A DNA stretch of 64,000 nucleotides, taken from the sequence record NC_041917.1; one strand, written 5' to 3'. The position numbers were made by a program, and so were the translations under genes. Under the pieces are notes generated by a model, which was not told the origin of the DNA, did not search any database, and worked only from the letters and a program-made list of their open reading frames with translations. Below, piece after piece: positions 10,749 through 61,382 of this stretch (positions are counted from its first letter, which is position 1; the number at the start of each line of letters is the position of its first letter).

Positions 10749-10777
10749 TGGAACAGCTTAAAAAAAGCTGGTATAAT
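10749..10777 (+). promoter_or_regulatory. TGAAAC-class promoter (TGGAAC variant)
   Basis: TGGAAC-17-TATAAT with extended -10. Confidence 0.65.
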
Positions 10778-25878: not shown

Positions 25879-26349
25879 ATGAATCTAGTAACGAATGATG
25901 GACATAAAGTTTATTATAGTGCATATCACTTAAAAGTACATGCTGATGTTTGTGAGTACTTAGAAGAAGCAATAAGTACTATTAATACGCATTCTGCACC
26001 ATTTATTAAGATAGCTGTCCAATTCGATAAAATTATTGGACAAAGTACATGTGTCAACGTTTGTAATGGTGATGAATTTAAATATGCTAAACGTATTGGA
26101 CGTAAATATCCTACTCGGTTTGTATTAAATCGTGAACCAGAACCATGTAGTACAGTCACCGTTATTATGAAACGTACTCCCAATAGTGATAAGTACGGAT
26201 ATACCCTATTGACAGCATATATTGGTGGGTTAGCAACCAAAGAAGTGCATGATCCTAAACTAACTTATGAAGAAGCTCATGAGGCACATGAGTTTTGGAA
26301 TTCACATGCATTGATTTGGGATGAATCAATTATTGAACAGACGGCGTAA
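25879..26349 (+). CDS. conserved hypothetical phage protein
   Basis: ORF track. Confidence 0.8.
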   Translation: MNLVTNDGHKVYYSAYHLKVHADVCEYLEEAISTINTHSAPFIKIAVQFDKIIGQSTCVNVCNGDEFKYAKRIGRKYPTRFVLNREPEPCSTVTVIMKRTPNSDKYGYTLLTAYIGGLATKEVHDPKLTYEEAHEAHEFWNSHALIWDESIIEQTA

Positions 26350-35955: not shown

Positions 35956-36657
35956 ATGCATTCAGATATGAAAGCTGCATTAGATGCTGCGTTAGAAGAC
36001 ATTAAAAATATGTCATCTGATGACTTCTTTGCAAAATTGTATGGTTACAATTCAGAACAGTTGGAAGCCTATACTGAAGAAGTATTTTTAGTCGAGCTTC
36101 AGTACTTGAGAAGTTTCTTTGTAGATGGGGCATATTCTTTTGAACCAAGCTATGATAATCTTCCAGTACCAGAAATTACGAAGTTGTTTTGGAATTATAT
36201 TGAAAGAAATGCTCGTAGCACATATGAAGACACGTCTACATCATTTCCAACATATTACGTTGAATTGCCTAAGTATGGTATTCGTGTCACGCACATTTAT
36301 GGTCAAGGCACTGTTACCGTTGTAGAAGACTTTGATTATTCTGATCCCATGTATATTGTTAAGAACATTACACGTTTTAAGCGTGAAGCTGCATGGGAAC
36401 ATCAACGTAAAATTGATGAATTATTGTATGGAAAACCAAAACATTTAGATGAAGTACGTTTTAGTACTGAAGTTAATGGTATTGGTATTGTGGATACTGG
36501 TATCATTGAACGTGTGTACACCAAGAAAGGTGTAGTGCGATATTTGATTGATTCTGTTAATAACGGTAAAGTACTAGTATTCTACGATCAGGGTGAAAAA
36601 TATCCAATGGATGCAGTAGAAATAATTGAACTTCATCCAAACAACTACGATAGGTAA
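35956..36657 (+). CDS. hypothetical protein
   Basis: ORF track. Confidence 0.8.
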   Translation: MHSDMKAALDAALEDIKNMSSDDFFAKLYGYNSEQLEAYTEEVFLVELQYLRSFFVDGAYSFEPSYDNLPVPEITKLFWNYIERNARSTYEDTSTSFPTYYVELPKYGIRVTHIYGQGTVTVVEDFDYSDPMYIVKNITRFKREAAWEHQRKIDELLYGKPKHLDEVRFSTEVNGIGIVDTGIIERVYTKKGVVRYLIDSVNNGKVLVFYDQGEKYPMDAVEIIELHPNNYDR

Positions 36658-36663
36658 TATATC

Positions 36664-37005
36664 ATGGAAATTGATTATAAGCTGGTGCGTGAGTTAACTC
36701 ATGATTTGGAAATGAACGGTCGTCAATTTATTGCACGTGATCGTTTAATTCAGCAAATGAAAGCTGATGGAACTTATGATGTTAAGCACGGTCAGGATTT
36801 AATTTATTTCCATGTAGTAAGTGGAATGATTAATTCCATTATTGAAAAGATCTTTATGTACTTAGAATATAAAACTGTAAATGAAGGTCTTGAAAGTGCA
36901 TTTCGTGGTTTAGTGGAAAAAGAGTACAACGAATATAAAGAATATTATAACCATTGTGATTTTTTATCTGCAATGGATAGAAAGTACGGATTGAATCTAT
37001 TATGA
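36664..37005 (+). CDS. hypothetical protein
   Basis: ORF track. Confidence 0.75.
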   Translation: MEIDYKLVRELTHDLEMNGRQFIARDRLIQQMKADGTYDVKHGQDLIYFHVVSGMINSIIEKIFMYLEYKTVNEGLESAFRGLVEKEYNEYKEYYNHCDFLSAMDRKYGLNLL

Positions 37006-37199
37006 ATATTGAACAAAAACTTACACCTAAGTATTGGGCTGCACATGATTCCCGTACTGATGATGTTATTTTAAGTACCTTGTTTAAGTACAAGCAAGAT
37101 ACATATGATGAATTAGTGAAGTTGTATGGTGAAGATTGGGAAGATACACATCCTAATTTGACTATTGACTTAATTGAACTGAAGTTAGTTCAACTGTAA
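37002..37199 (+). CDS. hypothetical protein
   Basis: coupled ORF. Confidence 0.7.
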   Translation: MNIEQKLTPKYWAAHDSRTDDVILSTLFKYKQDTYDELVKLYGEDWEDTHPNLTIDLIELKLVQL

Positions 37200-37210
37200 C
37201 AGAATACTGA

Positions 37211-37460
37211 CCGTTGTTGGGATGTTGGCTTAGAGGCAGCAATCATATAATGAGTGTCGAGAACGATCCGTAATTGGTAAACGTACCACAATGACCAATC
37301 GTATAAGTTCAGGGGAAGAAAAGACCGGATACAGTTATGTTAGTACGGTATGCACGGGCGGCGTATACTTAATACAGGAAAGGTAGGTGGTACTACTTTG
37401 TACTGATAAATGCTAACATAGACCCTTAGAGACTTTGGCGTAATAGCACACCATCAACGG
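37211..37460 (+). ncRNA. ncRNA containing a split mimic of the 23S rRNA L11-binding (H43-H44) domain
   Basis: GGATGTTGGCTTAGAGGCAGCAATCATATAATGAGT ...182 nt... GCGTAATAGCACAC, closed by CCGTTG/CAACGG. Confidence 0.75.
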
Positions 37461-37492
37461 CTTTTTAATTAAAATAATATATGGTATAACCT

Positions 37493-37825
37493 ATGACTAT
37501 TAAAGTTAACGGTACTGTAACTGAAGTAAAATCAGTTGAAGTTGATATTAGCATAGTTGAACTCGAAAAAGCGGCAAATCAGTTGACAAACGGACAACTT
37601 CTTATTATATTAAAACGGAAGTTGGTTCAACAATTAATTTCAAAAGATCCTGCACTACAAGGTGCAGAACTTTCATGGCATGGTACATGTTGGGAAGTTT
37701 TTGATTACTATGATTATCATCATCGTGAAGATAAGTACAAAAAACTTCGTGATTTAAATGATGAAGAAAAGTACGCACTATCCACATTCAACGATGTATT
37801 TGAACTATTCAGGAAATTACAATGA
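37493..37825 (+). CDS. hypothetical protein
   Basis: ORF track. Confidence 0.75.
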   Translation: MTIKVNGTVTEVKSVEVDISIVELEKAANQLTNGQLLIILKRKLVQQLISKDPALQGAELSWHGTCWEVFDYYDYHHREDKYKKLRDLNDEEKYALSTFNDVFELFRKLQ

Positions 37826-38079
37826 CAGTACAAAAATTTGAAAAGTTACCTATCCAGATTGATGCCCTTGAATGGACTGGTAATAATCTTAAAGAGTTAA
37901 AAGCCTTTGCGAGTCCAAAAGAAGTAAAGATTAATAATATGGGTCATTGCAAAATTGAAACTTTAGAAGGCTGGTTAACTGCATCGATTGGTGATATGAT
38001 CATCAAAGGTGTACAAGGGGAAATTTACCCATGCAAACCTGATGTGTTTGCACTAACGTATCGTAAAATTGAGGAATAA
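37822..38079 (+). CDS. widespread conserved phage protein of unknown function
   Basis: IETLEG..GD.IIKGV.GE.YPCKPD.F..TY motif. Confidence 0.85.
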   Translation: MTVQKFEKLPIQIDALEWTGNNLKELKAFASPKEVKINNMGHCKIETLEGWLTASIGDMIIKGVQGEIYPCKPDVFALTYRKIEE

Positions 38080-38082
38080 AAA

Positions 38083-38421
38083 ATGACGCACTAGAATGAT
38101 AAAACTTGGATCTATGTATTTGTTCGTACTGATTTACCAATCGAACAAGTTGTAGTACAATCAAACCACGCCGCTTATGAAAGCGGATTAGCATTCGAAA
38201 ATAACAGTACTGAGACTAGTTCTCTAATCGTTATCTCGTGTAAGAATAAACATAAGTTACAAAAAGCATATGATGAACTCCAAGCTGAGGGTATTGATTT
38301 AATTCAATTCCATGAACCAGATTGGGATTATGGTTTAACTGCATTTGCCAGTGCTCCAGTAACCGCTGAACAGCGTAGTATCTTCCGTAAGTTTCAACTT
38401 TTTCGTGGAGGTGCTAAATGA
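38083..38421 (+). CDS. PTH2-like protein with in-frame TAG at codon 4 (readthrough candidate; missed by ORF track)
   Basis: SD GAGG + ATG-ACG-CAC-TAG, then 108 open codons with YVFVRTDLP..Q..VQ..HAA and FHEPD..LTA motifs. Confidence 0.75.
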
Positions 38422-38984
38422 TTTATCCTAACACTTTCGAAGAATTGCTACAAGTAATGCAAAAAACTGAGCAAATGAAAGGTCTTAGTGTTCATGCACA
38501 TGGACTTATGGTTGTTGAACAGTATAAAGTACTAATTTCAGAACTTGACACTGGATAGGGCGACCCTATATTACTTGAGGTATATGGTAAAATTAAAGAT
38601 AAGATTTTATCAGATGATATTGTATTACGTTACCAAGAGTTTCATGATTGTGGTAAACCAATATGTCGTGTAGTTGATGATGAGGGTAAAGTTCATTTCC
38701 CTGAACATGCTAATATCAGTGCAGATGTTTGGAGTAAGCTATTTCCAAATGAAAATGTCATTCAAGAGTTGATGCGAAAAGATATGACTTTCCATGTTGC
38801 AAAATCTGATGATTTTGATACAATATGGCAAGATCCTTTAGCACCTACTTTGTATGTAACTGCATGGGCTGAGATTTTAGCGAACTGTACAATGTTTGGT
38901 GGTCAGGATAGCACTTCTTTTAAAATTAAAAAGAAGAAGCTAATTCAAGCAGGTAAAAAGTACTTAAACTCTTTACCTAAATAA
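38418..38984 (+). CDS. HD-domain phosphohydrolase with in-frame TAG at codon 47 (readthrough candidate)
   Basis: SD GGAGG, ATGA coupling; one TAG at 38556-58, then HDCGKP..F.EHA motif in the same frame. Confidence 0.75.
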
Positions 38985-39026
38985 TTTTAAGGCGGCTACG
39001 GTCGCCTGTTTTAAGAGGTTTCCATT

Positions 39027-39488
39027 ATGGAAAGTAAAAATACTGAAAATGTAATGACTGTTGAAATTTTCAAAGGAGCCACGCAAGAAACTATTTTTGT
39101 GTGTCGTTCACAAGGACAGTACTTTGCACCTGACCAAACGTATGATATTCATGAACATGAATACATCAAACGCTACGATACACATTTTTATCATAAAATT
39201 GATGAAAAGAATTGTCGAGAAAGTCATCGTGAAATCATGTTTGGTAAAGATGGAAAACCTGGATATATCTTTAGTTTAGCTAAAGGTTTATCAAAATCAT
39301 ATAATTTAGGTGAACTTGACAGTATTGTATTCACTTTTAGTGGATATGGTGACTGTACGGGTGAAACCTTTATTGTTAGTACTCTAGACTATGCAGAAAA
39401 GGAAGAATTTCAGCAAATTGTCGATGACAAGGAATTACTCTTTAGTAAGTTTAAAGAAGCATTCCCTGAACATGAATTAAATTTATAA
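39027..39488 (+). CDS. hypothetical protein
   Basis: SD GAGG. Confidence 0.8.
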   Translation: MESKNTENVMTVEIFKGATQETIFVCRSQGQYFAPDQTYDIHEHEYIKRYDTHFYHKIDEKNCRESHREIMFGKDGKPGYIFSLAKGLSKSYNLGELDSIVFTFSGYGDCTGETFIVSTLDYAEKEEFQQIVDDKELLFSKFKEAFPEHELNL

Positions 39489-41615: not shown

Positions 41616-41644
41616 TGGAACGACTTAAAAAAGTCTGGTATAAT
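41616..41644 (+). promoter_or_regulatory. TGAAAC-class promoter (TGGAAC variant)
   Basis: TGGAAC-17-TATAAT before the suppressor tRNA. Confidence 0.7.
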
Positions 41645-41665: not shown

Positions 41666-41741
41666 GCCTTTGTAGCTCAGTTGGTAGAGCGGGAATCTCT
41701 AAAATTCTTTGTCGTCGGTTCGAGTCCGACCATCGGCACCA
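41666..41741 (+). tRNA. amber suppressor tRNA (anticodon CTA)
   Basis: stem GGAAT/ATTCT, loop CT-CTA-AA, canonical D and T arms, encoded CCA; two acceptor-stem mismatches. Confidence 0.85.
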
Positions 41742-41743
41742 AT

Positions 41744-41852
41744 GCACAAATGATGGAATTGGTAAACATAACGTCCAACAATAGCTAATGCGACGATAGG
41801 AGGTGGGAAGTACCGCGAGGTTTCCTTATAGGTTCGAAGCCTATTTTGTGCA
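41744..41852 (+). tRNA. atypical class II tRNA-like RNA with enlarged anticodon loop
   Basis: GCACAAA/TTTGTGC acceptor, Leu-type D loop, long variable arm, about 22-nt anticodon loop. Confidence 0.6.
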
Positions 41853-41873
41853 CTTTTAATTGAGGGACATAAT

Positions 41874-48566: not shown

Positions 48567-48691
48567 GGCGAGTTAGCTCAGTTGGTAGAGCACGTAGAAA
48601 CCCAAGATTCAAGTACTTGAATCTTACAGCAACAATAACTCATACACTTTTAATGTCGTGGTCGTTGGTTCGAATCCAACACTCGCCGCCA
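48567..48691 (+). tRNA. interrupted tRNA-Lys(TTT), 49-nt insert 48595..48643
   Basis: removing the insert gives CGACA-CTTTTAA-TGTCG; insert = AAGATTCAAGTACTTGAATCTT + ACAGCAA; encoded CCA. Confidence 0.8.
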
Positions 48692-58703: not shown

Positions 58704-58785
58704 GCGGGATTAGCTCAGTGGTAGAGCACTTGCCTTCCAAGCAAGAGGCGAATAGGTTCCATCGGTTCGAATCCGATATTCCGCT
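58704..58785 (+). tRNA. trnG: tRNA-Gly(TCC) with unusually long variable region
   Basis: CTTGC-CTTCCAA-GCAAG; 15-nt variable region. Confidence 0.85.
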
Positions 58786-58903
58786 CAAACTAAACAAACA
58801 ATAAGGTGATTTTTATGCTATAGAATCCTAGTACTGGTCCTCCTAAAGAATTTAATTCTGATATAAACAACTCAAAATTAAACTACTATAGGAAGAACAT
58901 ACC

Positions 58904-61081: not shown

Positions 61082-61382
61082 TGATTGGAAAACTATACAT
61101 AATGTATTAAATGAGTACTACACTTCTGGTGAAGATGCTTTACATTATGGAAACGTATATTATGAGTACTGGATGCACTATTGCACCTTTATGGGAACTA
61201 GCTTTAACTTTACGGATGAATACATTCAGTTTGGTGAAACACGTTCCTATATAGATAAAGTACTTGATGAAGAATCACATTTTCAATTAAGTACTGTGTA
61301 CAATTTCTACGATCTAACATTCGAAGATATTACAGCACTTAAAGAAATCTATATATTCAAACGCGGGGAACCTACACCATAG
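61047..61382 (+). CDS. hypothetical protein, EExxFQ paralog family (ends in TAG)
   Basis: LDEESHFQLST motif; stop TAG lies in the terminator hairpin. Confidence 0.7.
   Translation: MLMRVKHNLSIDDWKTIHNVLNEYYTSGEDALHYGNVYYEYWMHYCTFMGTSFNFTDEYIQFGETRSYIDKVLDEESHFQLSTVYNFYDLTFEDITALKEIYIFKRGEPTP

Follow-up and report, generated by a model that had tools for sequence, protein, structure and literature searches.

Protein synthesis can be gated by the decoding of one codon, as at the in-frame UGA of prfB, which encodes release factor 2 (RF2), and at the TTA codons read by the bldA tRNA in Streptomyces. The amber suppressors of the laboratory (supE and supF of Escherichia coli, psu1+ of phage T4) are mutant sense tRNAs of known identity whose CUA anticodon competes with release factor 1 (RF1). 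Suppressor tRNAs are also often annotated, and left unexplained, in large phages that use the standard genetic code. Here we analyze a 64,000-nt stretch of DNA (record NC_041917.1; hereafter the window) in which an original prediction, made without database searches, had placed a tRNA with anticodon CUA at positions 41666–41741 of the plus strand and had assigned it to targeted, regulatory suppression in a phage that is not globally recoded. The window is 100% identical to positions 248001–312000 of the record of Serratia phage BF (KY630187.1; 357,154 bp; genus Eneladusvirus), and for whole-genome counts we joined it with the rest of the BF genome. Our analysis indicates that this tRNA, tRNA(CUA), is probably a working amber suppressor and that its conserved target is a linked gene for an HD-domain protein (the HD gene), which lies 3.1 kb upstream on the same strand and is interrupted by an in-frame TAG. 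The full-length HD protein requires UAG read-through, and the HD family and CUA tRNAs travel together across large phages. For the BF tRNA this supplies a definite target that is conserved, together with a protein that regularly accompanies such tRNAs.

Like the laboratory suppressors, tRNA(CUA) has the body of an ordinary elongator tRNA with a CUA anticodon; it differs from them in being a wild-type, conserved gene that has no sense-codon twin. As in the bldA and prfB systems, one protein (the HD protein of BF) depends on the decoding of one codon, with a dedicated tRNA in control of very few genes, although for BF a feedback is only proposed. The code 15 crAss-like and Lak phages (10.1101/2021.08.26.457843) resemble BF in combining a phage-encoded tRNA(CUA), low G+C content, a standard-code host and TAG that is rare as a stop codon, and in that an in-frame TAG makes expression depend on the tRNA. 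They differ in that dozens of their late, structural and lysis genes are recoded, whereas in BF a single, non-structural gene is interrupted and ~13 TAG stops are kept. In the route put forward by Borges et al. (10.1101/2021.08.26.457843), low G+C content makes TAG stops rare, a standard-code phage then gains a suppressor, and in-frame stops follow. BF appears to stand at the minimal or earliest stage of this recoding route, but with a fixed, conserved target, and it provides a living example of how a genome at that stage, between standard and recoded, is organized.

The Xanthomonas jumbo phage XacN1 (PMC5852040) also bears comparison; like BF it is a jumbo phage that encodes CUA tRNAs and ends ~3% of its genes in TAG, and it carries a full tRNA set. 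Its authors read through all 18 of its TAG stops and found no target, whereas for BF a target is identified. Both XacN1 and phage Xoo-sp13 have a member of the HD family, which is uninterrupted in Xoo-sp13. In the literature we found no paper that ties the HD protein to suppressor tRNAs or describes an HD-gene target. Why a phage that is not recoded should keep an amber suppressor becomes a testable question in the cultivable phages BF, CBB, GAP32 and fHe-Yen9-04.

A conserved tRNA(CUA) gene with an ordinary tRNA core

ARAGORN calls the element at 41666–41741 (+ strand) as a class I tRNA of 76 nt with an encoded CCA, and Rfam matches it to model RF00005 with 60.1 bits (E 1.6e-10), far above the 29-bit threshold. 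The anticodon CTA (41699–41701) sits in a 7-nt loop, CUCUAAA, with U33 and a purine at position 37, and the discriminator is A73. The core has U8, A14, G15/C48, G18 and G19, T54, T55 and C56, and A58, together with a 5-bp anticodon stem, a 5-nt variable loop, an 8-nt D-loop and a TTCGA T-loop. The loop CT-CTA-AA, the CCA end, A73 and the acceptor pairs G1-C72, C2-G71 and C3-G70 are all as the original prediction described them. Its description of the cloverleaf as canonical has to be amended: the tRNA is real, but two acceptor pairs are mismatched, U4·C69 (T41669/C41734) and U5·U68 (T41670/T41733), both of which are flagged by Rfam and visible in the fold. The energy of the single-sequence fold is no better than that of shuffled sequences (z -0.28), and it is therefore the covariance model and the observed covariation, rather than thermodynamic stability, that support the gene.

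Among eight related phage CUA tRNAs, 15 of the 21 stem pairs are altered on both sides, in all four stems, with 95% of cells paired; shifting the 3′ partner as a control cuts pairing to 31–50%. G1-C72, A73 and the anticodon loop CUCUAAA are unchanged in all eight. The tRNA of Yersinia phage fHe-Yen9-04 differs from that of BF at two D-loop bases (97% identity), and the flanks of the two genes are far more diverged. tRNA(CUA) is a living tRNA gene, and the anticodon loop is its most constrained part. The acceptor stem GCCTTTG/CATCGGC, with both mismatches, is common to BF, fHe-Yen9-04 and CBB; the stem has no mismatch in GAP32 (GCCCTTG/CAAGGGC), nor in Kaldavass and XbC2 (GGCTCAT/ATGAGCC). The mismatches of BF are a derived, conserved feature.

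The gene has been labeled in several ways. GenBank has tRNA-OTHER/tRNA-Sup for BF, tRNA-Sup-CTA for fHe-Yen9-04, Sup-tRNA for GAP32 and suppressor tRNA for Kaldavass, while the Erwinia pEa_SNUABM phages, CBB and XbC2 carry the label tRNA-Pyl; the papers on these phages merely list the suppressor tRNA. That tRNA(CUA) is a pyrrolysine tRNA, as ARAGORN and several of these labels have it, is suggested by the CTA anticodon only, and we regard it as vanishingly improbable. A tRNA-Pyl has a 6-bp anticodon stem, a 3-nt variable loop and a short D-loop that lacks G18 and G19, and it goes with pylS and pylBCD. The BF tRNA has the ordinary core set out above in each of these parts (8-nt D-loop with G18 and G19, TTCGA T-loop, 5-bp anticodon stem, 5-nt variable loop), and tyrosyl-tRNA synthetase (TyrRS) is the only aminoacyl-tRNA synthetase annotated in the BF genome, where pyrrolysyl-tRNA synthetase is not annotated. 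The anatomy of the tRNA leads us to reject this identity; "Pyl" is just the name that ARAGORN gives to CTA.

An in-frame TAG interrupts a conserved HD-domain gene

The HD gene (38418–38984, + strand) starts with an ATG behind a GGAGG Shine-Dalgarno sequence (38407–38411) and has 188 codons if UAG is decoded. Codon 47 is a TAG (38556–38558, + strand; context GGA TAG GGC) that is followed by 141 open codons and is the putative decoding site of tRNA(CUA). GenBank splits the gene into BF_0405 (46 aa) and BF_0406, which is started at an internal Met, and leaves 71 conserved codons unannotated. This division into a 46-residue stub and an N-terminally truncated open reading frame (ORF) is a recurrent mis-annotation that is corrected here; PHROG 26054 is made up solely of such 46-residue stubs.

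The TAG at codon 47 is common to BF, fHe-Yen9-04, GAP32, CBB, Kaldavass and XbC2 and to four IMG/VR genomes (355–371 kb), and the whole 189-codon arrangement (TAG at codon 47, terminal TAA) is identical in these six named phage lineages and the four IMG/VR genomes. In every genome with this TAG a CUA tRNA lies 2.7–3.6 kb downstream on the same strand. The lineages are separated by 0.3–1.3 synonymous substitutions per site (dS), and the ratio of nonsynonymous to synonymous substitution (dN/dS) is 0.05–0.2 in the N-terminal piece, in the stretch that follows the TAG and in the remainder alike. The first in-frame ATG, GTG or TTG after the TAG is not conserved but falls anywhere from codon 52 to codon 118 depending on the phage (codon 118 in BF), and the C-terminal part is therefore not a separately initiated gene.

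Homologues without an interruption occur in Salmonella phage Arash and Acinetobacter phage ME3. Searching a database at E <= 0.001 gave 207 homologues, of which nearly all are intact as one ORF. Across 88 homologues, H30 before the TAG and H78, D79, H99, D124 and H128 after it are invariant; G31, also before the TAG, is invariant too, and the family has the H...HD...D metal-binding pattern. The two BF pieces fall on one PHROG profile, phrog_14850, where the N-terminal piece covers 82–119 and the C-terminal piece 132–267. Homologues have various residues in the column aligned with the TAG (W, D, T, V, E, A, K, I), which belongs to the surface loop that joins helices 2 and 3.

If the tRNA were a pseudo-tRNA in decay, and if the HD gene were either a pseudogene or split into two halves that function separately, then the two acceptor-stem mismatches, a fold energy no better than that of shuffles and the two separate genes of GenBank would all be accounted for. 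We consider this very improbable. The tRNA is 97–100% conserved amid diverging flanks and its relatives show compensatory changes; dN/dS is 0.05–0.2 on both sides of the TAG, with no further stops or frameshifts in ten genomes; and with no start codon for 35–70 codons after the TAG the HD motif is not translatable on its own.

The AlphaFold (AF2) model of an uninterrupted homologue, P0029 (62% identity to the BF protein), is an all-helical HD domain with a predicted local distance difference test score (pLDDT) of 97. Foldseek matches this model to HD-domain proteins with template modeling scores (TM) of 0.6–0.73. The best structural match is the HD region of the CC-adding tRNA nucleotidyltransferase of Aquifex (PDB 3WFO–3WFS; O67911), with TM by query of 0.60–0.64 and E of 2e-4 to 1e-3; the profile match has an E of 0.003. 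Like the HD family, class II tRNA nucleotidyltransferases such as this enzyme have an H..HD..H..D metal-site pattern. They differ from the phage protein in that the latter is a stand-alone domain of 180–190 residues that lacks the nucleotidyltransferase head, at an identity below 22%, and its activity is a predicted one. Neither BF piece matches the Pfam HD family (PF01966), for which the best family member reaches E 0.016 and 16 bits against a cut-off of 22 bits.

Directly upstream of the HD gene lies an unannotated small ORF (38296–38409, + strand; phrog_34073, E 6e-23), and the pair is conserved with gp84c/gp83c of Salmonella phage Arash (tblastn 71% over 38 aa). The neighboring gene considered for a synteny (co-loss) comparison with Rak2-like phages is confined to the same clade. 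In one of the IMG/VR genomes, IMGVR_UViG_3300042923_000569 (L028/L042), the tRNA (~L028:9380–9440) has the loop CCCUAAA, in which C33 replaces the otherwise universal U33, and its T-stem contains a mismatch. This tRNA escapes ARAGORN, and the HD gene there still has its TAG.

TAG remains a stop codon in phage BF

To count stop codons we used a simple codon-usage caller, which gave 533 genes covering 90% of the BF genome; the calls are approximate. As had been noted for a sample of genes, most end in TAA (411) or TGA (106), and 16 end in TAG. Two of the 16 TAG calls are spurious, one of them an antisense ORF whose "stop" is the anticodon of tRNA(CUA). With these and the in-frame TAG at 38556–38558 set aside, ~13 genuine TAG stops are left, about 2.5% of BF stops, in a genome whose G+C content is low (34%). 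The ~13 real TAG stops are followed by another in-frame stop after a median of 12 codons.

When TAG is read as sense, three coding-strand places have coding signal on both sides; the same exercise gives 44 places for TGA and 69 for TAA. Same-frame neighbors are thus common by chance and alone prove nothing. The TAG at 61380–61382 (+ strand), which had been given as an ordinary stop and which we used as a control, is kept in Yersinia phage fHe-Yen9-03, where the downstream gene, in frame in BF, is out of frame. Two in-frame TAGs had been reported. One in-frame TAG, at 38556–38558, is supported by the evidence above; a second, at 41829, is unconvincing, being 15 codons upstream of the ATG of its gene and inside a degenerate tRNA-like remnant. 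Of the three places with coding signal on both sides, the remaining one, at record position 26291 (BF_0054/0055), is likewise an ordinary stop: fHe-Yen9-04 and GAP32 have TAA there, and in fHe-Yen9-04 the gene that follows is in a different frame. Global recoding in the style of code 15 is rejected, in agreement with the original prediction, since ~13 genes end in TAG and there is one robust in-frame TAG in 357 kb. A search for a release-factor gene in BF found none.

HD-family genes and CUA tRNAs occur together in large phages

We collected 80 IMG/VR loci with a member of the HD family, which form 65 clusters at 90% identity and 50 at 70%. A suppressor-type tRNA lies within 6 kb of the HD gene in 38 of the 65 clusters (29 of the 50), at a median distance of 1.7 kb, and in the dereplicated set all 36 of 36 suppressor tRNAs are on the strand of the HD gene. 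CUA is the commonest anticodon near the HD gene (46 of 298 tRNAs), with Met next (19), and ten HD loci hold only CUA or UCA tRNAs. In arrays of at least three tRNAs, the suppressor is the one nearest to the HD gene in 9 of 18, where 4.1 would be expected (P about 0.005). The HD-family loci are not recoded: reading TAG as sense raises the ORF density by less than the same treatment of TGA, which served as the control. As a control for the association we used 80 loci centered on a Thg1-like gene (a PTH2 family was discarded as a control, as it gave 3 loci and a loose alignment). Of the Thg1-like loci, 15 of the 19 with an HD gene contain a CUA tRNA, as against 2 of the 61 that lack an HD gene (Fisher 7e-11), and CUA accounts for 22 of 74 tRNAs with the HD gene against 2 of 96 without it. 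No other protein family is as constant in HD-gene neighborhoods; PTH2, Thg1-like and DUF4326 proteins occur in a few.

Most HD-family genes that adjoin a CUA tRNA have no TAG, which weighs against read-through as the sole basis of the association and means that tRNA and enzyme must be tied by something besides read-through of this gene. These TAG-less members show that the partnership of tRNA and HD gene is itself older. In the family as a whole, in-frame TAGs occupy five different alignment columns. The first is the site of the BF clade and the second, in L115, is next to it. The third, the "LPP*" site, is found in at least five lineages (L049, L058, L061/62, L037 and L039); the fourth lies just before the HD motif (L038) and the fifth in another loop (L118). 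At the LPP* site, where a conserved (K/R)LPxW motif normally has its Trp (W in 49 of 83 rows), a single change has turned TGG into TAG.

These data bear on two further explanations. The tRNA could be a functional suppressor without a dedicated target, with a nonsense codon fixed by drift at a tolerant loop position as the first step of the gut-phage recoding route. The high variability of the TAG column, its place in a surface loop, the 34% G+C content and the rare TAG stops all fit such a course, the last two in line with the model in 10.1101/2021.08.26.457843. Drift should strike genes at random, yet the sole interrupted gene of ~530 belongs to a family physically linked to CUA tRNAs in distant phages; this family has TAGs at five positions, one of them replacing a conserved Trp; and the TAG at codon 47 has not reverted in ten genomes at dS up to ~1.3. 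Drift alone explains poorly why the one interrupted gene is of the CUA-linked family and why TAGs arose there repeatedly, and we hold this explanation to be unlikely, though not so unlikely as to be set aside lightly.

Alternatively, tRNA(CUA) could be mainly non-decoding, for instance by serving the HD enzyme or a tRNA-targeting host defense as substrate, guide or decoy, with the TAG read at a low level by near-cognate tRNAs of the host. This would suit a partnership that is independent of read-through, as most HD genes adjoining CUA tRNAs lack a TAG, and it would suit the nearest structural relatives of the protein, the HD domains of CC- and CCA-adding enzymes, as well as the presence in BF of RNA ligases, a polynucleotide kinase and a CCA-adding enzyme. 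Against this, the CUCUAAA loop is invariant in the tRNAs of the BF clade while all four stems co-vary, as selection for decoding would have it, and in-frame TAGs arise repeatedly in these phages. We rate a mainly non-decoding role as distinctly improbable.

Two loci with an HD-family gene have unusual contents. In L098 (3067–3279), the HD gene is accompanied by two UCA tRNAs (opal-suppressor type), which are the sole tRNAs in the 12.5-kb locus. L037 (Logan ERR10482444 contig), which has a TAG-bearing HD gene and a CUA tRNA, encodes at 1245–1916 a release-factor-1-like gene with an in-frame TGA; it has the PCRF and RF-1 domains, a PxT-type motif "PPT" and GGQ, and lacks domain 1.

A proposed coupling of the HD protein to suppression

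We propose that tRNA(CUA) would be transcribed from its own phage promoter and would compete with host RF1 at UAG. Termination at codon 47 would yield a 46-residue stub that contains only the first invariant His-Gly, and read-through would yield a 188-residue enzyme, a predicted HD-domain phosphohydrolase, that includes the HD, His and Asp residues. Production of the HD enzyme would thus follow suppressor activity in both timing and amount, and would not occur otherwise. Collateral read-through would be limited by the rarity of TAG stops (~2.5%). The in-frame TAG may in this way couple synthesis of the HD enzyme to suppressor activity, as a feedback on suppression or as a switch that serves as a timer. 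The HD enzyme may act on tRNA 3′ ends, and action on these or on the suppressor is plausible because of the nearest structural relatives of the enzyme and its tRNA-rich neighborhood. More broadly, and tentatively, we think it possible, if somewhat short of an even chance, that HD enzyme and suppressor tRNA form a two-part module of large phages, not recognized before, in which the suppressor, or the 3′ end of tRNAs in general, is what the enzyme works on, and in which UAGs that evolved independently within the enzyme gene in several lineages close a feedback loop that sets or switches the level of UAG read-through during infection. Should the HD enzyme prove to act on the suppressor tRNA, this would amount to a novel way of controlling how stop codons are decoded. 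Of the original proposal of targeted, regulatory suppression, the targeted part stands, given a single TAG 3.1 kb upstream that is kept in relatives together with the tRNA in a gene with more than 200 uninterrupted homologues; the regulatory part we infer.

Several points weigh against a working suppressor with the HD gene as its selected target. The two acceptor-stem mismatches could weaken the BF tRNA, and both its charging and its decoding of UAG are predictions from sequence. Since the position of the TAG is a variable one, the codon could be a tolerated nonsense codon that drifted in after the suppressor and not a selected switch, and the invariance of TAG (as against TAA) over this divergence is, taken by itself, modest evidence. 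The HD assignment comes from conserved residues and a fold match of TM 0.6–0.7, with the Pfam HD family below threshold. The association statistics pool related contigs, depend on ARAGORN calls and ignore phylogeny.

The amino acid inserted at UAG

The acceptor stem (G1-C72, C2-G71, C3-G70, A73) had been said not to identify the amino acid with certainty, and three further approaches failed to do so as well. By the identity rules of E. coli, A73 and these three acceptor pairs argue against Gln, Trp and Glu, and leave Lys, Phe, a Thr-like identity or Tyr open. Among homologues of the HD protein, the column of the BF TAG is variable and indicates no residue. Trp cannot be carried over from the LPP* lineages, as the change from TGG to TAG there says nothing about BF. 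In our phage collection the nearest non-suppressor to tRNA(CUA) is a tRNA-Phe of a faecal phage (74%), with Phe, Thr and Lys at similarly low scores; the E. coli genomes gave no useful match; and the BF genome itself has no sense-codon twin. Nearest-neighbor voting with 56 distinct CUA tRNAs against 374 phage tRNAs gave no consistent answer (Phe 15, Arg 11, Met 10, Thr 7, Lys 6). Suppressor tRNAs of different lineages have differing acceptor stems and either A73 or G73 as discriminator, and different phages may therefore insert different residues.

A tie to the phage TyrRS was considered and rejected, as this is a canonical bacterial-type enzyme and BF has its own class II tRNA-Tyr. The BF TyrRS is shared with phages outside the BF clade, and the CBB paper reports TyrRS as common to CBB and Rak2.

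A promoter family on the plus strand

The promoter predicted upstream of the tRNA (41616–41644, + strand) consists of TGGAAC (41616–41621), a 17-nt spacer that includes a TG at 41636–41637, and TATAAT (41639–41644). Its extended -10 element (TGgTATAAT, 41636–41644) is of sigma-70 type. TGGAAC matches the -35 consensus TTGACA at only 3 of 6 positions, which is why a generic sigma-70 scan missed the site; that scan gave no excess of promoter-like sites over chance (31 against 25 +/- 6). In place of TTGACA the phage has a TGRAAC element specific to it. The pattern TG[AG]AAC-N16-18-TATAAT occurs at 36 sites in the whole BF genome, all on the plus strand and none on the minus strand, whereas second-order Markov simulations give an expectation of 0.8 +/- 0.8, and the TGGAAC-17-TATAAT promoter is thereby borne out as one of these 36. 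The sites usually have TGn before the -10 element and an A-rich spacer. They lie 8–40 nt upstream of genes for replication, a late sigma factor and others, and 10–23 nt upstream of eight tRNA genes (the suppressor and seven others); those in the window are at 10749, 21235, 27537, 33184, 40063, 41616, 52515, 52699, 58183 and 62174 (+ strand). In fHe-Yen9-04 the -10 block and the leader of the tRNA(CUA) gene are conserved amid diverged flanks. The suppressor tRNA gene is preceded by what is, judged by its sequence, a promoter of its own, of the commonest recognizable class in BF.

Other tRNA-like elements and tRNA-related genes

tRNA calls were made mainly with ARAGORN, which misses odd tRNAs; its calls number 20 for the window and 29 for the whole BF genome, all within 269–320 kb of the record. 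Directly 3′ of tRNA(CUA), relaxed ARAGORN settings (with a 17-nt "intron") give a degenerate tRNA-like element at 41744–41853 (+ strand), for which Rfam gives no match at E <= 1. Seven base pairs form a helix like that of an acceptor stem (GCACAAA/TTTGTGC) and the T-arm is good (ATAGG TTCGAAG CCTAT), but the anticodon region is disrupted. The counterpart of this spot in fHe-Yen9-04 is much longer.

Three more elements of the window depart from the usual form. The tRNA at 48567–48688 (+ strand; Rfam 48.6 bits) has ~50 extra bases in its anticodon arm and is missed by standard ARAGORN; it may be intron-bearing or broken, and a version of the search that allows introns guesses the anticodon TTA (ochre) with a poor stem, which leaves this anticodon uncertain. 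At 54006–54078 (+ strand), a weak tRNA-like element is found by Rfam only (36.4 bits); relaxed ARAGORN makes it a tRNA-Phe(AAA) with acceptor-stem mismatches, and it is possibly a pseudo-tRNA. The tRNA-Gly(UCC) at 58704–58786 (+ strand) is longer than the Rfam model by an insertion of ~11 nt in its variable region.

Outside the window, BF encodes a toolkit for tRNA care, namely two RNA ligases, a polynucleotide kinase/phosphatase, a Thg1-like enzyme, a CCA-adding enzyme with an HD domain of its own and TyrRS (record positions 36562–39355, 84109–84879, 99795–101054, 106350–107462 and 65811–67073). The large terminase gene, likewise outside the window (record 197500–199846; L010:47500–49846), is annotated as the overlapping genes BF_0272 and BF_0273, which are in different frames.
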